Below are positions 1 to 25,039 of a stretch of 32,000 nt of DNA, piece after piece (position 1 is the stretch's first letter; every line of letters starts with the position of its first letter). The notes beneath the pieces were generated by a model. That model was not told where the DNA came from and did no database searches. It worked only from the letters and a program-made list of their open reading frames with translations. Origin of the DNA: Zygophlyctis sp. KS116 (Eukaryota > Fungi > Chytridiomycota); contig BAAFSQ010000090.1 of the NCBI GenBank assembly GCA_054661495.1, positions 1 to 32,000 on the forward strand. The letters run 5' to 3'. The translations under genes and the position numbers were made by a program.

Positions 1-794
1 ACATCAATCTTTCCAGGTTCTACTTGTGATCCGGGAGCTGATGGTAATAACGGATCTGGTATTTCTGATGGTAATGACGGGTCTGGTATTTCTGTTGGTA
101 ATGAAGGGTCTGGTATTTCTCCAGAATCCGATGAATGCTTTCCTGAACTTGAATGCCTTCCTGAACTTGAGTGATTTCCTGGACTTGAATGCTTTCCTGA
201 ACTTGAGTGATTTCCTGGACTTGAATGCTTTCCTGAACTTGAATGCTTTCCTGAACTTGAATGATTTCCTGAACCAACAGCAGGCTCAACAGTAGGCTCA
301 ACAGTAGGCTCAACAGTAGGCTCAACAGTAGGCTCAACCGTAGGCTCAACAGTTGGTGATTGTCCGATCTGCAAGGGAACTTTGAAGATGTTCCATAACT
401 GTTCATCTTTCATAACGATGGCATTGACGGTCAATGGACCGGTTTCTGTACCAGTCCATTCAAACTTTCCGCTCTTGGAGGCAGATGATGAATGAGTGAT
501 GGTTGATTTACCACCACAATTGGGTGAATTTTTGAAATCTCTTGTTGAAGATTGTAGAGTTCCTACATGCTTACCAGAAGCATCACTGACATATAGTAAC
601 AATCCAATAAACTGATCGTTGATTGCGATTGTGGCCTTGTTGCCTTCGGGAGTTACAGCAATATCATATTTGAGGTCCGAAGTCGCACCTCCATGGTTGG
701 ATGTGTCAAATGTGTCTACATCACATATTGGAGCCCCATCGGGTCGAGCGATTGAAAGAGCTGCTAATGATAATAAAACAAGTTTCTGAAGCAT
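1..794 (-). CDS. Secreted protein with reeler-like N-terminal domain and Pro/Thr- and His/Ser-rich repeats (3' end outside window)
   Basis: Open frame from ATG 794 to the window edge, absent from the ORF track because there is no stop. Reads MLQKLVLLSLAALSIA (signal peptide) RPDGAPIC...FIGLLLYVSDASGKHVGTL...CGGKSTITHSSS..K...FEWT, matching reeler-domain motifs (P-x-GAP-x-C, FxGxLL, VGT, C..TITH, W). Followed by (TVEP)6, eight SGKHSS-like units and three EIPDPSLP units. Confidence 0.75.
   Translation of the reverse strand, partial: MLQKLVLLSLAALSIARPDGAPICDVDTFDTSNHGGATSDLKYDIAVTPEGNKATIAINDQFIGLLLYVSDASGKHVGTLQSSTRDFKNSPNCGGKSTITHSSSASKSGKFEWTGTETGPLTVNAIVMKDEQLWNIFKVPLQIGQSPTVEPTVEPTVEPTVEPTVEPTVEPAVGSGNHSSSGKHSSSGKHSSPGNHSSSGKHSSPGNHSSSGRHSSSGKHSSDSGEIPDPSLPTEIPDPSLPSEIPDPLLPSAPGSQVEPGKID
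39..120. repeat. 27-nt coding tandem repeat x3 (EIPDP[S/L]LP[T/S])
   Basis: tgatggtaat(a/g)acgg(a/g)tctggtatttc-like unit repeated three times. Confidence 0.9.
132..275. repeat. 18-nt coding tandem repeat x8 ([S/P]G[K/N/R]HSS)
   Basis: tgaatgctttcctgaact / tgagtgatttcctggact units. Confidence 0.95.
282..353. repeat. 12-nt coding tandem repeat x6 (TVEP)
   Basis: aggctcaacagt x6, one unit with a mismatch. Confidence 0.95.
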
Positions 795-986: not shown

Positions 987-2609
987 TCAAAACTGTTCAG
1001 AATGTAAAACAAACTCTGTTTCATACGTCGATACTTTGCTAATCTGATCCTTTAAAACCATCTCTAAAGATTTGGGGCCACAAAAAAACACTCCAACCTT
1101 TGTATGTATGCATTGCGGTTTAAGAGAATTCATGATCTTCTTTAGAATATCGTTCCATATAGGTCGACCGTAATGCGTAACATGTCCGAGCTCCTGATTC
1201 AAGGGCTTATCAAACTGATCCAGAATAATATTATGAATGTCACTTATGTCCAGGTTTCCTGTTATATATATGCTGCATTCAATAAAAGAATCTGAAGATA
1301 AAGTCTCAATTCTATGCAATTCATTTCTAAACCAGTAGAGGTCTTGTAAATCACGACAAACCCAAATGAAGTAAAGTTTTTCAAGTTTAATTGGCGCTTT
1401 CCTTTGATATGCATGATAAACTGATTTTAATATACCGGATGCAGGCGTTCCTCCTATCCCGGCACTGATTAATATCGAAACCTTATAATGAAGTAAATCT
1501 TGAACAGGCGCACCATAAGGTCCATCAATCAGCGCTCTTGGAATGTTAGATTTCCTGATTATTTCTAAAACACTTTCTGTCCAGTCTCCTACTACTTTGA
1601 TATGCACTGAAATGAATCCCTCGTGTGGAGCTGAAGTAATTGTGAAAGGATGCCATTCATACTTTGAAATTTCCGGAATATTCAGATACAAATACTGTCC
1701 AGGATTATAATTCATAGTTGGCTTTTCGAAATGCATTTCAATTACGTTTGATGGATGGATAATGGCGTCAGTAAGAACTGTATCTTCTCTAGATCTCCAA
1801 ATTCTGATTATTCGATCCACCAATGAAATCACAAAAACTGGAATTGTAAAATTATTAGAGTTATATCCTTTACATGTACCATCAATTGAAGATTTTACAA
1901 AACATCCAAAGGAATGAAAAAACAGTAGGATATAAAACATCCAATATAGTTGATGGGAATAGCTATTATATTATTTATAGATAAATCGTACAAGAAGATT
2001 TCATACTTTAATTTTTTAACAATCGGACAAGTTGCCGTAAAAATTATAAACATGATTAGGAGCATTCCATGTCCTGTAATGCCTGCCCATGATTTATAAT
2101 GTAATTCCCATGCTTTAAGCCGAAGTTGCGGTAATTTTTCTGGTACCTGAATATTAGAAATCAGTTAAAAATTACAGAGAAAAAATTAGTGTAATGCGCA
2201 TTTACATGAAGCAGGGTAAAGAAGAGTATTGAAAAAGAAGTGATCTTGTGTAAAAAGATACTATCATCAAAAGGGATCCACTTATTAATTAATGGTGATC
2301 TAAGTAATCGGATTAGATTTTTGCATGTCGGAAGTCTTGACTTTGTAAGATCAATAATTTAGCTTACATTAACAACACACAATCAAATGCAAGAACCAGT
2401 CCAGCTCCTCTTGAAACATAAATCGATTCACCAATTTGATTTAATAATCTTAAGCCTGGATCATCACGCTGCTTAATCCAACCATATGCGAATAGACCTG
2501 CATGTAGTCCAATATAAATGATCCAGAATAAGCAACATCTGAAAGTGAATGTAAAGTAATTGCTCCACTGAAAAGTTAAAATAGGATCGTAAGAAGAGAT
2601 TCTTTTCAT
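987..2609 (-). CDS. noxA: NADPH oxidase catalytic subunit, gp91phox/fungal NoxA-like (~510 aa, 4 exons)
   Basis: Exons 2609-2368, 2335-2176, 2146-1992 and 1962-987; GT-AG introns of 32, 29 and 29 nt keep the frame. Motifs: SRGAGLVL, LPTCKNL, four heme histidines (FLHK, NAHY, YSHQ, FFHSFGCFV), PGQYLYL, EWHPFTITSAP (FAD), DGPYG, AGIGGTP (NADPH), FFCGP and C-terminal EQF. No EF-hands. Confidence 0.93.
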
Positions 2610-2718
2610 TTTTTTAAGTTCCCTGTTCTGTCCGGACCCGAATGCGCCATTAATTTTCACTAAAAATAGTTCCCGCTAAAAATAGTTTGCGGCTAATTAT
2701 ATTTGATAAATCAATCTT
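2610..2718. promoter_or_regulatory. 109-bp bidirectional promoter noxA/noxR1 with two MEF2/Rlm1-type sites
   Basis: Divergent ATGs at 2609 and 2719; CTAAAAATAG at 2660-2669 and 2676-2685 flanking ttcccg. Confidence 0.6.
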
Positions 2719-3618
2719 ATGGCTGATATTTCAATTAATGAGATGTGGAGCAATGCATTGTCTGCTTATAGAGCAGGCAATAAAAGATCAGCAATTGATA
2801 TTTTTTCTCTCATTGCAAAGGCTGATGCTAGGATTTCATTTAATCTTGCATGCATATACATTGAGGATAAAAACTATCCAGTTGCATTGCAGTACTTGAA
2901 AGATGCACTGGAAATGGACAAATTTCTAGCAGTTGGCTATTTTCAAAGAGCACATGTCCGATATCAGCAAGGTCGATTTGATAGTGCTCATAAAAATTAT
3001 ACAAAAACTGTACTAGTAAGAATATTTTAGTTTCTAAATATATAGCTGATGGAAGGAAAACATTTGGATTTTAAATCAGAAGGATTAGAATTAACACTTT
3101 TTGAAGATGAAATCAAAATGAATATGACAATCACAAATCAAGCTAAGGAAGCAATTGCTCACCAGCAATCAAATGATTCAAAAAACCTTTTTACATTACC
3201 TCCGGGATTATTTTTTCATCCAATCAAGTCCAACAAAAAATCTCGCTTAAAGATCAACACCAATCATGAAATATTATCTAGTCCGCAACAAAACAGAACA
3301 TCTCCAGTACGCAACGATCCCAGAAACTTATCTACAGCCAAGAATGTGCCATTTTTTTCTCCAGTTTCACCAGATAGTATCCGTATTAAAATATTTTGGA
3401 ATGGAAAGAACGCCATGACCATTCTATCTCATAGAAAGGTTGCATTGTATGAAATCCTCAGACAAATCAGGTTTAAGATCCGTATAGATTTTGATCCTAC
3501 TCTACTAGACCCAGAAACCGGCAACATCATCAAATCTGATTCCATGCTTTCAAAACATTTAAGTGATATTGTACGCTCACAGTTCCAACTAAGAATTCAG
3601 GAAGAACTGCACATTTAA
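2719..3618 (+). CDS. noxR: NADPH oxidase regulator p67phox/NoxR-like, paralogue 1 (TPR + PB1-like, ~289 aa)
   Basis: Intron 3016-3045 (30 nt). ARISFNLACIY and DKFLAVGYFQRA align with p67phox SRICFNIGCMY and DKHLAVAYFQRG; also LDFKSEGLELTL and FTLPPGLFFHP. C-terminal IRIKIFW PB1-like domain. Confidence 0.85.
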
Positions 3619-3680
3619 AGTTATATAAGAAATTTCTATAAAATACATTGGCATCATTACATTAAAAGGATTAGTTCATT

Positions 3681-4084
3681 TTATTGATGAATCATACTAT
3701 AGGCCATCGTTGCGCACGCAATCATTAAAAAAGATGCGGGAATGATTAATACAATCTGAAAAAGAAATATTAAGCCACAGAGAAATGATGAAATCAGTAT
3801 TAACATCGTAAATGCCTTTGAAATCGGATTTCTTCTCATCAGATTTATGTTTGTCCAGAACAATAGATTAGCCAATAATATTGCCAAGATTCCAGGATAA
3901 GAAATCGGTTGATACCATTTAAGATACCTATCATCTTTGAGCATTACTGTATTTGAAAATATAAAGCTATAGATTCCTGCATTCATTAAAACTGTAAGTT
4001 AATGCTATTGATCGTACCAATTCCGCAAACGTAATATTGAACTTTTGCCCAGACTGCGAATGCTGATTTGTTATGATTAGTCAT
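3681..4084 (-). CDS. noxD: p22phox (CYBA)/NoxD-Pro41-like small membrane subunit (~125 aa, 2 exons)
   Basis: Exon 1 4084-4018, 26-nt GT-AG intron 4017-3992, exon 2 3991-3681. N-terminal FAVWAKVQYYVCGIVLMNAGIYSF parallels p22phox [23 protein letters not shown]. Central QPISYPGILAILLA and C-terminal LFQ...PASFLMIA...AYS resemble fungal NoxD as recalled. Several hydrophobic helices; the genomic context supports the call. Confidence 0.7.
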
Positions 4085-4119
4085 TTAAGATTTCACTTTT
4101 ATCCCGCAGAGTCAATTTC

Positions 4120-4574
4120 AGACGGCATGTGGCGCCGTCAATTTTGAAATTACTGAAAAGTGCAATGGACATGGGACTAAAATATACATTATGGAAAAGT
4201 GCTGAGAATGCATATTCGGACAAACAGTATAGTACTGCATTAAAGATTTATTCGTCGATCGGTCATCTGCCTCAGGTTTTGTTTAATATGGCATCTATAC
4301 ATTTGCTCAAGAATGATACTGGAAAGGCCATTGAATGTCTAACTAAAGCAATATCAATTGATAAGGTAAGCTATTGATCTTTTTCATTTGACTAGAAATT
4401 TGCAATCGCTTACTATCAGAGAGCAGTGTGCTTCTTTTTCAACCAAACATTTCATAGAGCGATTGCTGACTTCTCCTCAGTTCGCATATTATTGAAAACT
4501 AAAACTGTGGTTGATTACTCTCCTGCAGGACTAGATTTTAAGATTTATATGTGCGAAGTACTCTATAATATGGC
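4120..4574 (+). repeat. Near-identical duplicated segment, copy 1 (noxR2 promoter + TPR exons + intron)
   Basis: Matches 5721-6187 (ATG offset 1613); appears identical from ATG 4165 to about 4486, including the intron. Confidence 0.95.
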
Positions 4575-5382
4575 CAGTTGTTATGTTTCTTTAAAAGTAC
4601 CTGCCACAGCTGAGAGGCTGCTAGTTGCCGCCAAGAAATATGTGTCAAATGGATCTCATGAGCAGATAATTAAAGCTTCCGGCAAGTATATGGAATCCAA
4701 TATCTATACTATCGAGAACGGGTTGCAGTTCAAACCAAAAAAAATAAAAGATTCAAACAAAAGGATAAAGCGGGAGTTATCCCAGGGACCAGCAGGATTT
4801 ATGATGCGGAAGCAATCTCTAGATAATATCTCCAATCGAGGTTCTATATTGATTGAAACCCCCGATTTCATTCGTCAAACCAAGCACATGAGGACTTACT
4901 CTGCTATATTGGACCATTTCTCCGATTTTGAATCAGTCGGAGATATAGATTCAAAGGAACAAGTGTTTGAAGAATCACCTAGATCACATAAAAATCAACA
5001 GAAATGTGCTTATCGGAACGCTCACTTTACAGACCAGAATTACAATTCCGATTCTTGGCGGCAATCTAAAAATGAAAAGTCTATCAAAGATGATGATCAA
5101 TATCTTTTGAGGAATCTATCAAGTGCTGTACCGTCCGATAATATTCGTATAAAAATATTCTGGAATGGAAAGAATGCCATGACTATCCTTTCTCATCGTA
5201 TGGTATTGTTAAGTGATCTCACTCAACAAATACGTTCCAAGATACAAATAGATTTTGATCCTACTCTACTTGATCCAAAAACAAGTAGCATATTCACATC
5301 TGATTCAATGCTGTCAAAATATTTAAGTGATATTGAACGCTCACAGTTCCAATTAAGAATTCAGGAAGAGTTAAACATTTAA
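4165..5382 (+). CDS. noxR: p67phox/NoxR-like, paralogue 2 (TPR + long linker + PB1-like, ~395 aa)
   Basis: Intron 4366-4395 (30 nt) gives DKKFAIAYYQRA. DYSPAGLDFKIYMCEVLYNMA aligns with p67phox [21 protein letters not shown]. C-terminal PB1-like domain closely similar to paralogue 1. Confidence 0.88.
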
Positions 5383-5720
5383 CATTATAAATAAAGAATG
5401 TAAAATAAATTACGATCAGGGATTGATTTCATTGTTAATCTATTACTAAATATGTCAGGACTTAACGCTTCTGCCCCAAAACCAAAGCTTCAGACCATTC
5501 ATATATTATCCAGCTGGAAAAAATATCTGCATGTATATTGATTTAAGTTTTCATTCAATGGTTCATATTTTGAAGCGCATCTTCCATTGAACTAGTTATT
5601 GCAGTTGAATCAACGGACGCTCTAGAACTACAATACTCAGATACCGATGCCTTGATTCAAGTTAACTAGTAAACATGTCATATGATTTGTTGGGGCACAT
5701 TGAAAAGTTGGAGCAACTGA

Positions 5721-6187
5721 AGACGGCATGTGGCGCCATAAATCTTGAAATTAATCTTGAAATTACTGACAAGTGCAATGGACATGGGACTAAAATATAC
5801 ATTATGGAAAAGTGCTGAGAATGCATATTCGGACAAACAGTATAGTACTGCATTAAAGATTTATTCGTCGATCGGTCATCTGCCTCAGGTTTTGTTTAAT
5901 ATGGCATCTATACATTTGCTCAAGAATGATACTGGAAAGGCCATTGAATGTCTAACTAAAGCAATATCAATTGATAAGGTAAGCTATTGATCTTTTTCAT
6001 TTGACTAGAAATTTGCAATCGCTTACTATCAGAGAGCAGTGTGCTTCTTTTTCAACCAAACATTTCATAGAGCGATTGCTGACTTCTCCTCAGTTCGTAA
6101 ACTATTGAAATCTAAAACTGTGGTTGATTACTCACCTGCAGGACTAGATTTTAAGATTTATATGTGCGAAGTACTCTATAACATGGC
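5721..6187 (+). repeat. Near-identical duplicated segment, copy 2 (noxR3 5' part)
   Basis: Matches 4120-4574; carries an extra tandem aatcttgaaatt x2 at 5741-5764. Confidence 0.95.
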
Positions 6188-6839
6188 ATTTTGTTTTCGA
6201 TCATTAGATTTAACCGAAAAATCAGAAAGGTTGCTCTCACTAGCTATTAAATTTGCCGTGAATGATTCACATCGGCAAATTATTGAATCTTGTGTAAAGC
6301 TGCGTCGCATTACTTTGGATATGTTTACAATTGAGGCTGGGCTTCAATTCGCTCCAATTTTGAAACTAAAAACATTGGGAAAACAAGATATACCTAAAGG
6401 CGTGGAAAAGAATTCTGTAGATCAGTATTCTATATCAAGCTTTACAGACGAAGAGAAGAAAGGAAATAAACACCAAGCTAGCGATAATTACTTGAAACTA
6501 ATTCGATCTAAATCTTTAGTATTCAATCATTTATCATCAAGAAAAAAGGAAGAAACGAAAATTAATGTGAAAGAATCTTCAACTCCCAGTCTAAATCAAC
6601 AAAAACAGAAGTCGATGTTAAAGATTCAATTCCCAACCGGCAATTTAGTGATTTTACTAAATCATGATTCTGGGTTAGAAGAATTGAAGCGAAAGGTTGC
6701 GTTGAAATTGTATAATATGGGTGGAGGTGAGTATGATCGCATTTGCTTCAGGAAGGATGGATATGTGGTTAACACGGAAAAGGAGTTTGTGAATTTGCGG
6801 ATGCAAGAAGAAGTGCTTGAGCTCAGTCTTGATGTTTGA
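5778..6839 (+). CDS. noxR: p67phox/NoxR-like, paralogue 3 (TPR + divergent PB1-like, ~343 aa)
   Basis: Intron 5979-6008; same TPR motifs as paralogue 2; MFTIEAGLQFAP; C-terminal MLKIQF...LEELKRKVALKL consistent with a PB1 fold. Confidence 0.85.
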
Positions 6840-6902: not shown

Positions 6903-9097
6903 CTATGGATCCCCTTCTGAGAGATTCTCATTAGATGATATATCTTCTGTTAGATCTTCCGTTTCCTGATCCTCCAATATAGTAGAATTACCAAATCTTA
7001 AGGGACTTTCCATAGATACAGTCGAGGCCTCCTCTTTAATCGCTGCTTTCTTTTCCTGTTCTTGTTGTCTTAACCTCTGTTCGGCAACTGCCCTTATTGC
7101 TGCAGTCATTTGAGGATGATGAAGTAAAACCACATCAAGCTGTTTTTTCGACAAAGAATATAAAACACATGGGGTGAGACACTTGATAGATGCAGTTCTC
7201 TTCATTGTGCCGAATAACAAAGAAATTTCTAAATATCAGCCACTAAAATGTACCTCCAAAAAATGACCCCGATGCAAGAGTTGCTTTTACATCACCATTT
7301 ATACTTACTTCACATATACCGCTAGAAATAAAATACATTTCATCCCCTGTAGAACCAGCCTCTATCACCATATCTGCTGCTAGAAAGTGATTAAGCTCCA
7401 AACATAAAACCAGCTGAGAAATAAAAGAATTATCTGCGTCTCTAAAAAAGGGGACTTTTAAAATCAGACTTTTACAGTTATTTAATTGAATAGCCTAAAA
7501 AATAAGGTTTTTCTTATTACCTGTCTGAGTGGATTGTTTAATTCCGTCATGATACGTTTTTCATCAAAAAACTTTCCACCAGAGTATTTGTACTGATAAT
7601 ACTCAAGAATTCGATTCCTGAGATTCCAATCAAGTCCTTTGTACGAAATATATTGACTAACTTCATCCATTTTTTCTTGAAATATACGACCCGAACTTTA
7701 AATATTAGACTTTATCATCAAAATACCTGTCCAAACCAATCATAAAACTCGATATATTACCAACTAAAGTAGCAACTAAATAAGCACTTATGAGAAAATT
7801 GAGAATTGTGAGCCACCTTTCAACCATAGTTCCCGGTGGATGAGCACCAAATCTATTTTTTAACACAATCTATTTACCCTGCAGCCAGCATTTCTGCAGC
7901 AGAATGATAGAAAAATAGAGTATATCTATCATGAACTGCATATTCGCTGCTGTAATGATCATCAATTACTTGAGCTACCAAATTATGAATACAAGCAGAC
8001 CAATGCCAATATATTATCATAATCAATAGAATCTTAATTATAAAAAATATTTATCTTACTTTAACAATCCCCATTGTTGATGCGTTGATTTTTGTTTTCA
8101 TTCTGATTTTTTTCAAAAATGATTTATACCAAAATGGTTCCGGACCATTAATTAGCCTTAGAATTCTAAACCCATTTAACACACATATATATCTTAGTTC
8201 TTGGTTTAAAATCTGATTTGATGCTATAGGGCAAGCTGCATCAATAACAAATACATAAGGAAAAGTAGTAATTAAGTCCAAGTAAAAATTGTTACTTTTC
8301 AAATATGAATCCAAAATTGAATCTGGATCCATTATTGTGACCATATTCTTTTGTATACCTGTTCGGCATGAAATACACATTGATATGAAAAATATGATTG
8401 AAGTAAGTATCGTTAAATAAGGAAGCCCATTACTAAACTCGCTAAATCCCAACAATACAGGCAGAGTGAAAAACTGTATGATAATCACTATGGATTCTAG
8501 AGCGTCCCATTGTTTTTTGAATTCGGACATTGGGTGGATTACAAATGTTGCTGAAAACGTATCATTAATACCATTAATTGCCAACTGAGACTGGGAGGAT
8601 GCTGGTCCATCTACGTCACCCTGAACTCCTTTCCTAAAATAATCGGACCTCAGAATTCGATCCCATCTGGTTTGTCGCATAAAAGAGTTGAATGGAAATG
8701 ATTGCTGAAATTGAGTATTTGATGATAGAGGTATTTTTGACTCATCTTGATCGATGCAAACTGATCGTTCAATAGGATCTGCAGCGGATGCTGGATATGT
8801 CTTGGATTTATCGAGTGATTCTGACTTCCGTTTCATTCCAAATAATAATGTCTGGCCAGAAATTGAAACTAATGTTGAATTTAATGATTGATTACATCTT
8901 TTAGCAAAGCTCTGTCTCGATGATTGACCTGGATTGCTATTCATAGCTTCTGATGTCTGCATTACTAAAATACTTCTTGCAAAATTCATGGTCTCTTTTA
9001 CATCGCCTCGAATGTTCGATATGGCGGATTCTTCCTTCATCAACCTTTCTTCTATCTTCTGTAGCCGCTCCACTATAGTAGCCAAATCAATACTCAT
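6903..9097 (-). CDS. HCN/CNG-family cyclic-nucleotide-binding 6-TM cation channel (6 exons)
   Basis: IHPMSEFKKQWD (pre-S1), FYLDLITTFP (S3), FRILRL (S4), HWSAC (S5); spliced pore SAAEMLAAGFGAHPP (intron 7853-7877). HCN-like C-linker LDSSGRIFQEKMDEVSQY...KFFDEKRIMTELNNPLR. CNBD EMYFISSG...GSFFGEISLL...KRTASI. Confidence 0.9.
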
Positions 9098-9168: not shown

Positions 9169-12100
9169 TCATTGATCCTCATCAAAATCAACGTACTCAA
9201 ATGATGGTCGAGGTATGCTAGATACAGCAGTATATCTGTATGATGTAGGACGCAGCCTATGGCTGATTTCCTCCTTTACAGATACTAACTTATCACATAT
9301 CCAGAAAAACACTCCAGATACGGTTTCCTTGATAGTGTTGGAAAATTGTCTAAATTGGAAACTCCGGGAGGAGAATTCATCCATCGGCAATCTTATTCTA
9401 CCCATTCCATTTGATTTATAATATCTTGACCCCAAAAAGAATAGGATTGCTAATCCGAAAATAGATAGGAGCATTTGAAAAATGATTGATTTTGAATTTT
9501 GGGTTCCTAATTTTGTAAAATTAAAAAAGAATACCACAAGAAATCATTACAGCCTCATAATCTTCTTCTAATCCACTTTGACATTTACTTAAAGCTTTTT
9601 TCTTATACCCTTTTGAATATCTCTTGTAACCGTTTACACAAAGAGGCTCTGCCTTTATGTCCCTTCCTTTGAAAAAGCAATCACTATTTTGGCCCAGCTC
9701 ATAGTCATAATCACATTCAAAATCGTTTCTTGTACATTCACAAGGCGAAAAATTCGCTTTCGGAATTGGTGATTCACCAACGGGAGAGCAGTCTCTATCA
9801 GATTTCCTACGAAAATACTCGGACTAATTATCAGATATAAGCATTAAAAAACCTTTTGGCCCAAATTACAAGTCCCATTCAGGTAATCCCATGATTCGTA
9901 ATCGCTCTTAGTCTTGTCTTCATTATCCTGGCACTGGCGAGGCCATACAGAGGAAAAGTCCAAATGGACAGCAGTAAATTTACCATCCATTGTGCCACCA
10001 TGAATGCTTCCAAGGACAATAAAATGGGATGAAATTCCAGACGGATCACTCAATATGTTGGTGGCAAGCAGGCGACCACCGGCAATTTTATGATCAATAG
10101 CCAAGTCTCGTAAATCCACACCTTGATTAATGGAATATCTAGTATATAAATTATAATAAAAAACCTAATTGAAGCACTGGGATCTAAATCATTCGCAAGG
10201 ATAAATACAGCTCCTGATTCAGAAATCTCATACATATAAGCCTGATCTGTAATTTCGCTCCACGTTATTCCAGCATCCCTACTTAAATACATCTTACTAT
10301 CATTTTGAACTTTTAAATATTTCCCAACATTGCCCACACCCAGAAGCATCCCAGATGCAGTTGTTATTGAATATTGATCACGTTTATCATTCCTATCTGT
10401 ATATGCATGCAAATTCAGTGAACAATCTGTACATTCGTAGTCTACACCTTTAGAATCGCGTTTCGGGGGAATAAGAGATTTCCAAGTCAATCCTAAGATT
10501 AATCATCAATTTATACCATCATCATGGCTAATTTGAGTAACCAACTTTTGCATAGAATCCCCGTCGCTGCTACTCTCAATCAGCTTATTTACTAAAAAGG
10601 CTCCATTTAATCCATTTATCCTTTCAAAGTCAACAAATCCTCTCCCATCATGATGCACTCGATCTAGCACATGGCCGAATACTGTGCCATTCCAATTGCT
10701 TCTAAATAGTGAGCCATAATCCTGAAATTTATTAGTGAGAAGTTCTAAAAATATGCTTCCCGTGGAGCCCTGTAATATTGTATAACCAAAAGAGGATGAT
10801 ACTTCAACGCCCTTTGGAAAGATAGCTTCCGCCCATTCCAATCCATCTAGAGTAACCAAAAGTTTAGATGCCGTCTAAAGACATGAATGAGAAAAAACTT
10901 ACGTTTATCGCCAACATGAATTTATCAAAGATTGCAAATTCAGAAGCCATGAATATTTCAAATAATGTTTTCGGATCGTTAGGATCATCCAAACGGACTA
11001 AAGTCTTGTCCTTAGATGTGGAAGAGTATCTCGGGTCGTCCAGTGCGGGAATATTTAGACAGAAAATGCTTCTTTTTTCATGAGAAATAAATCTTCCTTG
11101 GTATCCCCAAAAACATTTTAGAGAATTTTTTAATGTCGATGTCCATGATTTGCCTGCATTCCATGATACAAAGGTCACCGTTTGACAGCCATTTTCAGAT
11201 TTCATGCAATTGATTGCCCCTATAAGTAACAACCAATCCTGTTCTAGTGCATGGGTAGATATGGGTTGAGCCGTTATAGTCAAATCAATTACTATCGGAA
11301 TCATGATTTCAATATAAGTTTCTCCTGAATCGTTAGTAACGTATAAAATTCTTCTATCTGTAACGACAAAAGCTCGATTATTCCTATTTGTATCCATAAC
11401 CAAAGATATAATATTTTCTGTAGGAAATAGCTTTTTCCAATTTGAACCATTATCTTTTGACTGATATAAACCACCTGAAGTTCTTATTAATAAATTTGAA
11501 GATTTATTAAATCGGTAAAACTCTGTCATAGATTCATTGAAAAAACTTGTATCAACTTTGACTTCCCCTACTTTCATATTAGTTCCACACATTCTATCAA
11601 TTTTTTGAGTCAAATCCTCGCCATTTTCGCACTCAGAAAGAGAAACTCGACGATATCCGGAGGAGCCTTGGTACATGTTTCCCATCTTACAATCTTTGGG
11701 CTCTAAAATGTCTTTACCTACCAGTGAGCAGGCACCATCGAATGAGCGAAGAAACCCATAATCACTAGAATTAAAAAAACATGGTTACCATTCATAGTCA
11801 ATCTTAGAACAGGAACATTTCTTTGATTTCGAAGAAATAAATGGGTCATAGTCCTGTCCAAAGTAACAAGGGGAGTCTGATTTTCTTTGAAGTAGAGTTC
11901 TTTTTGCTCCCAGCAGGCATTCGTCCTTTCCACCATTAGGCGACCATGATATCAAATGTGTTTCTTTGGAGCATTTTTGCTTTAAAACATCTTTGAAGTC
12001 AATGCTGAATATTCTAGAAGACGACGGATTATTCCAATCAGTACCAACCAGAAACAAATTTAGAGAATCGGAATTTAAAGAGGATTCTATATGATCAATC

Positions 12101-15100
12101 ATAAAAAGTTTTTCAGTAAATTGAAATTGAGTAAATGTTTTCCCAAAATCAAATGTGAAAATTAATTTGTTGGTAACTTTCTCTTCCGTAAAAGCAATAA
12201 TGTTCCCATAGTCTGCCACCGCCCATCGATATGTTCCATTTAATACTTCAGACCAATGAAGCCCACCATCGCGAGAAATGTATATGTTGGAATTTGCAAA
12301 GTCACCTAAATAGTCTCCTACATTACCAGAAGCAATTAACAATCCTGGGCATCGTTTTGGAGAAAAGGGTCCTCTTCTTGACATGATTCCGACACGTGAG
12401 TGGAGATGAAGGTTACATCCATCTCTTTGATTGCATTCATAAGGTTTTCCATTTTGGTCAAGTTCAGGCGGAGATATCTTTCTCCAAGTTGACCCATCGT
12501 CAAATGATATAACTGAACGGGTCTTGCGATGTTGGAGAGCTGCGTTTGGATTTATTACGTTGTTGGCAAAAATAATCCCTGAAATACCGTCTACTTTGTC
12601 AAAATCAACTATATTTTCAGAATAGAATCAATCACCTTTTCCCTCTAAATTTCTGGAACTGTCGCCCAAAATCTTAGAAAAATAATTCCCGTCTTGGTTC
12701 GATTTATAAAGAGCACCAGAGATACCATAACCCATCTGTGAAGACATCTTTGAAACATCAACGAACAAACCATTTTCATTTCCCGAAAGAAGAGTAAATA
12801 TCTAAATGAGTCAATTACCAAATCAAACATACATTTTGCTCCTGAAGAGCTTCTGGTGGAAATTCTGCTTTCTTTAAAGATAGTCCATCCGATGATACGA
12901 AGAGAACAGAGCTTGATATTTCTTTAGCCGCCACAACTAAGACGTTTGATACTACGTAGAATCCTAGAGCGCCCCGTTCAAGCAGCCGATTTCTTTTAAG
13001 GCCTTGATCGGTTATTAGAACAAACTCCATTTCATTAGCGATGCTTTCAGCATCATCATAATTATTTCTTAGTTTGTCTTGAGATAATTTACCATTTTTA
13101 TTGATGAAGCTTAGACAGAATATAGAGTCCAGGTCCAAATCTCCATTTTTAAAATTACTATCTCTAGCCCAAACACATTTTTCTGCCCATGTTTCAATTT
13201 GCTTCCAGTTCTCACCGTTATCTTTTGTGAAATGAATTGTAGTGTAACAAATCGGAGACGAAACACAGTCCAAAGGGCTTGAGGCGAATATGTACCAATC
13301 TTTCTCCGTTGGATGAAGGTCAAGAATAGGAACATCTATAGAATTCGGCGCAGATGGCAATTTCAATGAATATGCTGCATCAGAAACAGTAATATCATCA
13401 ATAATCCAAATTTCTGACTTTGAAAAAAAGTAGATTCTTGAAGATATAACTTCACTCGCACCAACTTTATATATAGATGTGTCTTTTAGGGTAATTACAG
13501 AGTAGAAATCGAAACCACTCTTTACAGATTTGAATACAGATCCAGTGCGAGTAATAATGAGCACCACCGTTGAATTTTCTACGTAAAATATTTGCTCCAC
13601 CATGGAATCAAAAACTAAAGATATTGCTCTGGGAGCATCCTGAGAAGGAGGACTGGGAAAGTTTGGAGAATCTCCAACGCATTCACGTGTGACATTTTCC
13701 AATAAGTTCATTCCGCCTTGACATTTGTTTCCTGGCACTTTCCGGTATCCTGAACTGCCCATGTAAGATTTTCCGGGCTTACAATCTAAAGGTTGATCAA
13801 CGAATTCTTTTTGCGGGACACACTCCAGTTCCTTTGTCTTCCCAGACCCGGAAAAACCAGCGTCACATTGATAATCATTTTTGGTACATTCACAAGTTGA
13901 GACTTGGGTTTCCGGAAGGTTAAAGTTTGGATCAATATAGCAGTCTGCGTCGGGTTTTCTTCTGTAGAATGTTAAATACTGACCCAGCAAACAGTTGTGT
14001 TCCTCATTTGATGGGGACCATTTTTCAAAATCATATGAATTGAGAGGATCGATAGAATCACATTGGCGCAATATAGATTGTGAAAGATCTACTTGTACAA
14101 TCCAACCACTCGAAAGATCGTCTGGAGATATCGCTACAAGAAGGAATTTGAGATACTTAGAATCAGGATCAAGTAAAGTAATCCAAGGAATCCATTTTTT
14201 TTCTTCGAGAAGAACATATGTTCTGTCCCAGGAAGACCCATAGTCTTGAGAATACAAAAAATGATCTTGCGGTGCTGCACCATCAGGTATAAGAATAATA
14301 ATAGATCCTGATGCCACCGTTTCGTATTTATATGGCCCTTTAGCAATCATTCCCCATGTACGACCAGCGTCAATCGAGAGAAACGTGTCACATTGCTCAT
14401 AAGGCTTTAAATACTCACCAACTGAACCAACCCCTATAATTAGACCAGGTGCAGATGTTGTAGAGAAAACTTTTCCGAGATTATGCGGATGAGTTACTGA
14501 ATGCAAGTGCAGATTGCAAAGACCTTCACAAGAAATCCTGTTTTGATTAAAATCTACAATAGGAGGTTGTAAATCATTCCACGATCTTCCGTGATCAAAT
14601 GATAACTTTGATACAAGCTGCTTGTCTTCTTCTGTGAATGAATCTTTCTGAATAATTTCATCATAATTCTTTACAACATTTGCCAAAAGTATTCCTTTAT
14701 AACTATAAGATTGAATTGTTTCAAAATCAACCAAATAATTTGAAGCATGATTTGTGTGATCTAAAGAAGGAGTGAATATCACCCCTTGATCATCTGAAAA
14801 ATATAATGTTCCAAAAGGAGGTATCAAGGAAGATTTGTTAGAAGCTAAAATATCAACAGTCAAAGAAAATGAAGAAGAGTCTAAAACCGTAAATCCACTT
14901 TGTAAATCTCCTGCTCCAGGAAACCTAGCTTCATTAAATTCACCTCCATTTTTAGAAACATAAAGCTTATTCCCATTAGATGACAAAGGTTTCTTTAATA
15001 AATTTGAAAGAAAACTTACCACAGCAGCTAAAATGAATCCATTAACATATTTCAATCCAACCACTCCCCCTCCTAGATCATGCTGCTTCTTGCTTGTAAA

Positions 15101-15819
15101 AAATGTCTTGGAGGAAACCAACTGTAATCCCTTTGAGTTCAGGTCACCATACTGACTTGCATCTACCCACTTTGTACAATATATATGATCCCCAGGCTCT
15201 AAATCCCAAACACACGAATTAACTAGAGACAACAACAAATCAAAAGTTTTTAAACCATCCAAAGTGTAATACATACTATCATAGCACAAATCATTAACAC
15301 AAGAGTTTCCTTTAACCAAAAACTTTTCAGGATCAGAAGTAAACTCTACTCCAGTCACTAAATTCTTATTTGGCAAAGAAAACCCATCCCAGGATTTACC
15401 CCCATCAGTGCTTTTATAGTTATTACCATCTGCTCCAATCACCACAGCCTAAAATAAGAGGATATTATTTACAGTATCAATATCAAAAGGATGATGTATC
15501 AAATCCTTAAAATTGGACGTTGGCAGTTGAACAGTTTCCCATGATGAGCCCTGATTAGAAGATCGCATTATAACATTATCTTGACGAAATAGTAATATAC
15601 TCTACTGATTAGAAAATAATTAAAACTTGCATTTTTAAGATAGAATATAGATTTTGGAATAGATTCTAATTTAGTAACAGCGAGCAAAACTCCCCCGTTC
15701 TGCGCAGGCCTTTGAATAGTATTAAAAAGAATCCCAAAGACCAGTAAAATAGATACCAAACCAATGAATAATAATCTCTTGAGGCTATTTTTCATATCCA
15801 AACAGTTTCTATTTGACAT
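9169..15819 (-). CDS. VPS10: Vps10/sortilin vacuolar sorting receptor with three Vps10 modules (multi-exon)
   Basis: N-terminal hydrophobic segment; many Asp-boxes (SxDGGxxW); three C..CxLxLH and GxxxxxGxVGxYL sets; three Cys-rich 10CC ends (SSGYRKVPGNKC, SSGYRRVSLSEC, SKGYKKKALSKC); C-terminal TM and tail GRIRLP...YRYTAV...FEYVDFDED. Confidence 0.92.
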
Positions 15820-16127
15820 TTTAGGGTTTTAAGTGTTACAACTACTGAAGCTGATTTAGAATTATCATGTAGATTTCTTGATTAAAGCATAATCTCTCTT
15901 GAATTTTAATGTATCATGATTAATGCATTTTCATCATTTTTGATTTTTTCCATGTCCGAATATTATGATGATTGATCAGGGAAAATTCCAGACAATAAAG
16001 ATAATGACAATGCAATCGATTGTAATTATATCAGTAATTGAATATGATTTAATCTATTTCAGCTACGAAATCACAAAAAGTAAACATCGGCGTTACATTC
16101 GGACATCTTCTTACGAAATTAAAGAAT

Positions 16128-16927
16128 ATGAATGCGACAAAAACAAAGGTTCAGTTGAAATTGGCGTTAAATAGGCTCAAACTATCACAGCAGAAACAAA
16201 CTTCTCTTATTGCAATCGCCAGACAGGAAATAGCCCAATTATTAAGAGTTGGGAAAGTAGACTCGGCACGTATTAGAGTTGAAATGGTCATTAGACAAGA
16301 CTTGATGGTAGAAGCAATGGAATTATTAGAATTATATACGGAAACTCTACTTGCTAGATTTCCTCTCTTAGAATCTATGAGGAATTGCGATCCTTGTCTG
16401 GTAGAATCTGTAAACTCACTTATATATGGCGCTCCAAGGGTAGATATTCCAGAACTACTTCAAGTAATTTATAAATTCTAAATTTAGGTTAGAGATCAAC
16501 TAATTTATAAATTCGGAAAGGAATTTGGACAGGCAGCAATGGATAATTTAAATGATATCGTAAATCCAAAGGTATTAACTAGTTTATTTAATTTAAGTTG
16601 ATTCAGAAACTTAAAATTGCTTCACCAGAAACTTTCTTGGTAAATCAGTATTTACTGGAAATAGCAAAAGCGTATAAAGTGGATTGGACAATAGAAGGAT
16701 CGGCGCCAAAATATGAATCACAAGTGGCATTACCATTGGGGTATCAGTCGAATTCCTCATTACCTTGTAAAGAATGCGCAGGCCTTCCAATGCAAGAGTC
16801 AACGAATGAAAAAAACGAATCTCTAGAGTTTCAAACAACATTTCCTACAATTCCCTCACCTCAGACTCATGATCCGGATTTTGATGAATTAGAAAAGAGA
16901 TTTGAAGCTCTCAAAAAGAAGAAATAA
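16128..16927 (+). CDS. IST1: ESCRT-III-associated IST1
   Basis: KVQLKLALNRLK, ARIRVE, MELLELY, IYGAPRVDIPEL; introns 16464-16487 and 16572-16597; C-terminal MIM1 DFDELEKRFEALKK. Confidence 0.95.
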
Positions 16928-16938
16928 AATTCAATTTC

Positions 16939-18859
<1,921 letters not shown>

Positions 18860-23525: not shown

Positions 23526-25039
23526 ATGGTAATTTCTCTAAATCTCATATATAGTCTGCAAAAGGGAAAAAAAGTGGATCTAAATCTTCTCTAAGTGCAT
23601 CTAAAACTGTTCTCAGTGAAAAAGGAGCTGATGCATTAGAAGCTGAAATTAAGAAATTGACTCTAGAATTGAATAAAGAAAGAGAAGAAAGGAATTTCTT
23701 TCAGTTGGAAAGAGTATTTATTATTATAAGAATAACTGTTAGGATAAGATAGAATCTTTTTGGAATATTACAAAAAATGAATTATCAAATACAAAAGCTC
23801 AATTACTAAATAAAGATCGTGAAATTGAAGAGCATGAAGAGAAGCATCAAGTGGAAATTAAAGTTTACAAACAAAAAGTTAAACATTTACTCTATGAATA
23901 TCAAAATAATGTTGCTCATTTACAAGCAGATTCAGAAAATGCAATCTCTTTAAAACAAGAAGAACATCGAAATTCTGAATTACAATTAAAAAAAGATAAA
24001 AGAGCTCTAAAAATTGAATTAAAGGAATTTGAACTCTCTCATCAAGATATAATCAAGAATTTAATTCAGAAACATGATCAGGAAATAACTAAAATGAGAG
24101 CAGATTTTGAAAGAAGAGCTAAAGAACTACATGTTAAATATGATAAGAGAATCAAGGCAGTCAGAGAGGACTTGGATTTGAAAAGGAAAAATGAAATTCA
24201 TGAAATTGAAGAACGTAAAAACTCTCAAATTAATGCTTTAATGAAGAATCATGATAAAGCATTTACAGAAATTAAAAATTATTATAATGATATTACTCTT
24301 AATAATTTGGCATTAATAAATTCACTCAAAGAACAAGTCGAAGAAATGAAGAAAAAGGAAGAAAGATCAGAAAAAGCAATGATTGATATTACAGCTGAAA
24401 ACAAGAGACTCTCAGAACCATTACAAATTGCATTATCAGAATGTGAATCTCTTAAAAGAGAATTAACACATTATAAAAAAGATAAAGCAAGTTTACAAAA
24501 TACAAAAGCGAGATTAAAAGTTTTAGAAGAAAAACATAAAGAACTCTTATGGGAACATGAAGTTTCTGATCAAAGATTTCAAAAAGTTGAAAGAGAAAGA
24601 GATGAATTATATGAAAAATTTGTTGATAGAGTCATTGGAGTTCAACAAAAAACAGGATTCAAGAATTCTATTTTAGAAAAAAAAGTAGAATTACTTTTAG
24701 AATCTTTAGAAAAAAAGGAAATTCAAATCTCTGAAGTATTAAAAGCCACCAACCTTGATCCCTCTGCTATTTCATCTTTAACAAGGAGATTAGAAGAAGT
24801 CTTGAATGTCAAGAACCAACAAATCAAAGAGTTACAGTATGATTTATCAAAAGTAACAAAGGTATTTTTAATATTATTTATTCTAGGCACATAATGACAT
24901 GATTCGTGTTTATGAAGCTAAACTTACAGAATTTTCTATTCCAGTTGAAGAATTAGGATTCAAACCATTGTTCATCTCTTCTAAAAATATAGCAGCTCCA
25001 AAGAATCCATCTGGGTTTGTAGCAGCTCCAGTGACATGA
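23526..25039 (+). CDS. GAS8: Nexin-dynein regulatory complex subunit 4 (GAS8/DRC4/trypanin)
   Basis: ATG followed directly by intron 23529-23554; EREERNFFQLER|DKIESFW, HQVEIKVYKQKVKHLLYE, IKNYYNDITLNNLALINSLK, AHND...YEAKL...IPVEELGFKP. Confidence 0.95.

Follow-up and report, generated by a model that had tools for sequence, protein, structure and literature searches.

We identify a compact NADPH oxidase gene cluster in the chytrid Zygophlyctis sp. KS116, in which genes for a catalytic subunit (nox), a small p22phox-family membrane protein (noxD) and three p67phox-type regulators (noxR1 to noxR3) lie side by side at positions 987-6839 of the window, that is, of the whole 32,000-nt stretch analysed (contig BAAFSQ010000090.1, positions 1 to 32,000; C90 of the 12.7-Mb assembly GCA_054661495.1). 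We propose that this locus is a copy of an old chytrid NoxA-complex cluster that was duplicated in this lineage and has since diverged, with subunits in the roles proposed below and with local NoxRs that may act as adaptors, and we consider this reading probable.

The five genes reported in the initial annotation are present where it placed them, with intact frames free of internal stops, packed into 5.85 kb, and the two head-to-head spacers have the lengths it gave. Introns (26-32 nt, GT-AG) were inferred from reading frame and consensus, and the splice models are predicted ones; database searches were run per exon, and exons were joined only to check frame and motif positions. The cluster contains the following features.

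987-2609, minus strand: probable noxA-type NADPH oxidase catalytic subunit, 510 aa (exons 2609-2368, 2335-2176, 2146-1992 and 1962-987)
2610-2718: divergent spacer between nox and noxR1, 109 bp from ATG to ATG, candidate bidirectional promoter
2719-3618, plus strand: noxR1, 289 aa (intron 3016-3045), with a p67phox-type TPR region and a C-terminal PB1-fold domain
3681-4084, minus strand: noxD, p22phox-family small membrane protein, 125 aa (intron 4017-3992)
4085-4164: divergent spacer between noxD and noxR2, 80 bp from ATG to ATG, its noxR-proximal part repeated upstream of noxR3
4120-4582, plus strand: copy 1 of a block of about 460 nt, 94.7% identical to 5721-6195, taking in upstream DNA and the intron, read as a recent duplication or a gene conversion
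4165-5382, plus strand: noxR2, 395 aa (intron 4366-4395), a mosaic without the activation motif
5721-6195, plus strand: copy 2 of the block of about 460 nt
5778-6839, plus strand: noxR3, 343 aa (intron 5979-6008), with four TPRs and a degenerate activation region

Tracing the best Nox homologues to their contigs reveals nox, noxD and noxR linked within 4.2-7.5 kb in Batrachochytrium dendrobatidis, Gorgonomyces, Globomyces, Entophlyctis helioformis, Polyrhizophydium, Polychytrium and Spizellomyces punctatus, seven genera of the Rhizophydiales, Polychytriales and Spizellomycetales; the neighbours of Nox at these loci were checked as NoxR and NoxD homologues. Homolaphlyctis nox and noxD bear consecutive tags (HPOL_001939/001938). 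The trio occurs in at least five internal arrangements, and gene order, strand and most flanks vary. Most commonly, noxR stands head-to-head with noxD and is followed by nox; relative to this layout, noxD is inverted in Batrachochytrium and Entophlyctis, and nox in Spizellomyces. The window has the common layout with two changes: noxR1 separates nox from noxD, and the outer noxR is present twice. On novelty the initial annotation needs correcting: a cluster unique to this genome is ruled out by its presence in the seven other genera, the linkage extending across three chytrid orders and occurring twice within the genome itself. A metagenome scan yielded three short loci, one of which (L036) is a nox/noxR head-to-head pair of the type found at the second copy, C18, described below. 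Three metagenomic nox/noxD pairs (P0008/P0172, P0025/P0130 and P0003/P0161) have the same longest contig sizes (31367, 7030 and 15234 bp, respectively), a hint of three further linked loci.

The genes that flank the cluster in the window bear on how this linkage has been kept.

6903-9097, minus strand: cyclic-nucleotide-binding channel gene; a related gene lies beside the cluster in the relative L034, in Globomyces and, more weakly, in Gorgonomyces
9169-18573, minus strand: Vps10 and fumarate reductase/cytochrome b5 genes, with an Ist1 gene between them on the plus strand

Vps10 and fumarate reductase neighbours are common to the window and the B. dendrobatidis locus. This partial sharing of flanks, including the channel gene, with other Rhizophydiales, together with an absence of linkage in Cladochytrium discussed below, could mean that the trio members have stayed adjacent through inheritance in compact genomes, selected neither for linkage nor for joint regulation. 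We regard such passive synteny as improbable: the trio persists through all its arrangements, also where the flanks differ (Polychytrium, Polyrhizophydium, Spizellomyces and C18), its three genes were duplicated together, and the subunits of one complex must initially have been brought together. The qualitative comparison of loci, in which flanks change while the trio persists, argues instead for probable selection on the trio.

The duplication as a unit is seen within this genome, which encodes at least three nox, at least five noxR and at least two noxD genes (counts that are lower bounds), with both noxD genes clustered. The second trio, at C18:16237-19469 (L006:5238-8470), occupies 3.2 kb and is bordered by an Rpc34-like gene (RNA polymerase III subunit) and an SF3B1-like gene. 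In it, nox stands head-to-head with noxR over 65 bp, followed by noxD, and the encoded NoxR retains the activation motif and has no recognisable PB1 domain. An unlinked, multi-exon noxR at C216:8277-9524 (L051:4278-5525, minus strand) encodes canonical TPRs, the Rac-contact Arg, the activation motif and a Pfam PB1 domain, and a third nox at C285:1-1439 (L008, minus strand), truncated by the contig end, is possibly a NoxB. Candidate partners, Cdc24 and a CBS-PB1 protein, are encoded elsewhere in the genome. The initial annotation had supposed that the cluster might be accessory to canonical nox genes elsewhere, and had called for a count of other loci. Other loci do exist, as a second trio on C18 and as the unlinked second-clade nox and noxR, but a simple accessory status does not hold, as the window cluster itself represents the NoxA-clade locus of chytrids and has neighbours in common with Batrachochytrium. 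Sequence divergence identifies the window locus as the more divergent of two paralogous trio copies. C18 may be the conservative copy and the window copy perhaps a specialised oxidase, with its local NoxRs serving as adaptors or dampers.

The window Nox matches the Pfam families Ferric_reduct, FAD_binding_8 and NAD_binding_6, the latter two in its last exon, which also matches human NOX2 (expect value (E) 8e-60). In its model, the heme-ligating histidines fall on transmembrane helices (TM) 3 and 5 as His110/124 and His189/202, with spacings of 13 and 12 residues. An extra TM3 His equivalent to NOX2 H119, a TG motif (T178/G179) and an Arg54 equivalent are present, as are the FAD- and NADPH-binding motifs HPFT, GPYG, GxGxTP and CGP and the terminal Phe; the protein has no EF-hand extension. 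Ferric reductases share these Pfam domains, but we reject a ferric or metal reductase with near certainty, given the extra His and TG motif, both criteria that separate Nox from ferric reductases (PMC9421330), the 13/12 spacing, the grouping with NoxA proteins and the adjoining p22phox and p67phox homologues. By motif content, the enzyme is a member of the NOX family, with superoxide as its predicted output.

Two near-invariant residues of this enzyme are altered. GIGGTP stands in place of GIGVTP, whose Val is present in 113 of 120 homologues, and the TM5 HH is HQ, as it also is in P0002, a relative with 68% identity; the C18 Nox retains both GIGVTP and HH. Together with the long branch of the window Nox and its degenerate activators, these changes could mark the window copy as a decaying duplicate under relaxed selection, with C18 as the working oxidase. 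We find this unlikely, as all five frames are intact, the HQ is common to P0002 and the relative L034 keeps the layout. Moreover, the proportion of nonsynonymous differences (pN) is well below that of synonymous ones (pS) in all five divergent gene comparisons, from which we conclude that the noxR and noxD genes are maintained.

Phylogenetic analysis of 54 Nox sequences groups the clustered Noxes into one chytrid clade (100/99), the sisters of which (100/100) are Dikarya and Mucoromycota proteins, some of them named NoxA or Nox1. The Noxes of the window and of C18 pair as sister paralogues (100/99), and the C285 Nox, also on a long branch, is placed in the other chytrid clade. Noxes of this second clade are unclustered in the regions searched, 8-10 kb for Polychytrium L033 and one side only for C285. 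Magnaporthe NoxD binds Nox1 and not Nox2 (PMC5542705), a pairing that the clustering of NoxA-clade genes with noxD fits.

The small membrane protein is recognised through its family. Window NoxD alone is too divergent for any Pfam match, a homologue search with its exon 2 as single query was empty, a 7-sequence profile did not reach p22phox, and a search of this genome with Pfam DUF7727 gave no match. A profile built from window NoxD and its syntenic orthologues gathers 48 relatives. In the alignment of 48 sequences made next, DUF7727 is matched by 22 members and Cytochrom_B558a by 3. The profile of these 48, window NoxD included, matches human p22phox (E 6.6e-8), and no other match falls below 0.08. 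By homology the small gene is a member of the p22phox/NoxD family, and its product is predicted to bind Nox. The model of exon 2 (predicted local distance difference test, pLDDT, 92.6) aligns with residues 21-128 of p22phox (root-mean-square deviation (rmsd) 2.8), and Foldseek with this model returned nothing significant; the structure comparison is compatible with the assignment and not discriminating. Several zoosporic fungi carry duplicated noxD-like genes, all annotated as hypothetical: their tags are consecutive in Boothiomyces sp. JEL0866 and in Paraphysoderma, and Cladochytrium, Terramyces and Geranomyces have two genes each.

The identities of the three NoxRs, which the initial annotation had assigned along with NoxA and NoxD, likewise stand. 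For exon 2 of noxR2 and noxR3, p67phox is the sole PDB match (E 1e-12 and 3e-14), and for exon 1 of noxR1 it is the best natural one (E 4e-11); a sequence search of the PDB with exon 2 of noxR1 gave no match. Unrelated TPR families are ruled out by these matches. All three proteins have the p67phox-type TPR domain including its beta-hairpin insert; in noxR1, the fourth repeat has lost about 25 aa. The top structural matches of the modelled noxR2 C-terminal domain are PB1 domains (MEKK3 PB1, Z 11.4, rmsd 1.8); the noxR1 and noxR2 PB1 domains are 78% identical, and the divergent noxR3 C-terminus is PB1-like by alignment only. None of the three C-terminal domains matches Pfam PB1, and their acidic OPCA motif is degenerate. 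The activation domain (the Lys196...Val204 region) is missing in NoxR1 and NoxR2 and degenerate in NoxR3, whereas five chytrid orthologues retain the motif, as do the C18 and C216 NoxRs. The Rac-contact Arg102, kept in the C216 NoxR, is Lys in NoxR2 and NoxR3 and Met in NoxR1, and the Asp67 equivalent is retained in NoxR2 and NoxR3. In Epichloe NoxR, R101E abolishes RacA binding (PMC8146680).

noxR2 is a mosaic that joins a noxR3-type TPR region to a noxR1-type PB1 domain. Its 5' part of about 460 nt, upstream DNA and intron included, is 94.7% identical to noxR3, with about 300 nt at 99%. Since synonymous sites are near saturation beyond this shared block, the two genes probably stem from an older duplication, followed by recent conversion. 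The 99% identical stretch, and the fact that the whole stretch lies within no single listed contig, could indicate that noxR2 and noxR3 are one gene presented twice by the assembly. This is an artefact to which we give almost no credence: in two runs, which may be those of the source samples, unique unitigs border a 411-nt repeat unitig whose depth is about 1.5-2.6x that of the flanks, a contig from an independent sample covers 5532-6154, and the downstream parts of the two genes differ at saturated synonymous sites. The relative L034 has the order nox, noxR1, noxD, GNAT gene, noxR3, with no noxR2, and shares the nox/noxR1 head-to-head layout over a spacer of about 76 bp. The GNAT acetyltransferase gene (L034:7215-7694) is intronless and lies between noxD and the noxR3 orthologue, the place of noxR2 in the window; with that query, no counterpart was found in the window or elsewhere in this genome.

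The trio was duplicated to give the window and C18 copies, and the window copy then gained noxR genes, one as a mosaic, and diverged. By analogy with animal and ascomycete work, NoxD would bind Nox and stabilise it in the membrane, Nox would carry electrons from NADPH through FAD and two hemes to O2, and Rac-GTP-bound NoxR would turn on this flow, while PB1 domains may connect the complex to polarity proteins such as the Cdc24 and CBS-PB1 candidates (PMC2121648). The short divergent spacers would allow joint expression. Because their activation motif is lost or degenerate, the window NoxRs may most plausibly serve as TPR/PB1 adaptors, positioning the oxidase or tuning it; activation might then be supplied by the C18 or C216 NoxR, or the requirement for it might be relaxed in the divergent window Nox.

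The main rival to this proposal is a self-contained module, as put forward in the initial annotation; on this reading the three local NoxRs would be true specialised activators that co-evolved with the window Nox, each with its own location or timing. The window Nox and NoxRs did diverge together, a relative with about 68% nucleotide identity across flanking genes retains both the noxR1 and the noxR3 type, and purifying selection, the conserved Asp67 equivalent and the conservative Arg102-to-Lys replacement in NoxR2 and NoxR3 all agree with such a role. We nevertheless hold it to be possible but doubtful, because the activation motif is lost or degenerate locally and kept in the C18 and unlinked C216 NoxRs, the Rac-contact Arg is gone, NoxR1 lacks part of TPR4, noxR2 is a mosaic and Nox is altered at two near-invariant residues. 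A bolder extension of our proposal, which we advance only tentatively, is that the trio cluster, as yet undescribed, is under selection, is co-regulated and goes back to the ancestor of most chytrids (perhaps even of fungi, with later dispersal), and that the window duplicate has a new control logic in which three NoxR adaptors without an activation domain target or restrain a divergent oxidase. Spizellomyces is a saprotroph and Batrachochytrium a frog pathogen. Since the trio is found in saprotrophs as well as pathogens, a role in development or polarity is likelier than one specific to parasites. The co-regulation and the roles in host penetration, encystment or defence that the initial annotation suggested are putative.

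Several observations weigh against our proposal of a duplicated NoxA-complex cluster with adaptor NoxRs. Linkage is not obligatory, since two Noxes from Cladochytrium that belong to the same clade lack any noxR or noxD neighbour out to 8-10 kb. The structure search with noxD exon 2 puts p22phox level with unrelated helical bundles (Z 7.9). The Nox tree holds no labelled Dikarya NoxB, and the B. dendrobatidis Nox was classed as NoxB in an older neighbour-joining survey (PMC4206789); for both reasons, membership of the window Nox in the NoxA/Nox1 subfamily is probable and not proven. Finally, the Dictyostelium p67-like protein also has no typical activation domain (PMC2121648), so loss of the motif need not equal loss of activation.

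The window encodes the same three subunit families as the fungal NoxA(Nox1)-NoxD(Pro41)-NoxR-RacA system of Podospora, Botrytis, Magnaporthe, Epichloe and Neurospora. The gene tags of Magnaporthe (NOX1 MGG_00750, NOXR MGG_05280, NOXD MGG_09956) and Neurospora (NCU02110, NCU07850) are far apart, in contrast to the adjacent genes of the window, and this genome differs further in its numbers of noxR (at least five) and noxD (at least two) genes, three of the NoxRs having a lost or degenerate activation motif. The human NOX2-p22phox-p67phox-Rac complex provides the best natural PDB matches for all three window subunits; by comparison, the window NoxRs lack SH3 domains and NoxD (125 versus 195 aa) lacks the proline-rich p47phox-binding tail of p22phox. 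The human phagocyte oxidase genes lie on different chromosomes. The Dictyostelium p67-like protein, NcfA, is encoded by a single gene, unlike the three in the window, and we know of no clustering of this gene with Dictyostelium nox genes. Like the window NoxRs, NcfA is a p67phox homologue with TPRs and a PB1 domain. Three NoxR isoforms have been published for Allomyces macrogynus, a case of multiple noxR in a zoosporic fungus like that of this genome, and no statement on their linkage was found in that paper (PMC4206789).

The named homologues closest to the window genes are those of chytrids, in line with the zoosporic origin proposed in the initial annotation, and the window DNA is present in freshwater and estuary metagenomes. 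A GAS8/DRC4 flagellar gene at 23851-24894 fits a zoosporic organism. The flanking Vps10 gene (9169-15819, minus strand) is long, with repeated luminal modules, and the Batrachochytrium cluster neighbour is a 2297-aa triple-module Vps10. Adjoining nox, positions 1-794 (minus strand) encode a secreted-looking protein truncated by the contig end, in which a Cys-containing N-terminal domain, reeler-like by eye and without Pfam support, is followed by PTVE and His/Ser-rich repeats.

We found no description of chytrid nox/noxD/noxR linkage in the accessible literature; the 2015 paper of Lacaze et al., which reportedly defined fungal NoxD by phylogenetic analysis, lies outside that coverage and may hold one. 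All components belong to known families. What is new may be the linkage, the duplication and the remodelling of the window NoxRs, with earlier notice of the linkage a real possibility.

Collectively, our data describe how genes for a single enzyme complex stay together, in operon-like fashion, across chytrid orders, and lend genomic support to an old NoxA-NoxD-NoxR partnership in fungi. They also name chytrid NoxD where databases say hypothetical (for example, BATDEDRAFT_90395 and SPPG_07580). Spizellomyces and Batrachochytrium are both transformable (PMC7213984, PMC10823177), and the part played by superoxide in zoosporic fungi can therefore be tested at a single compact locus. With its remodelled NoxRs, the window copy offers a natural set of activator variants for dissecting p67phox/NoxR function.

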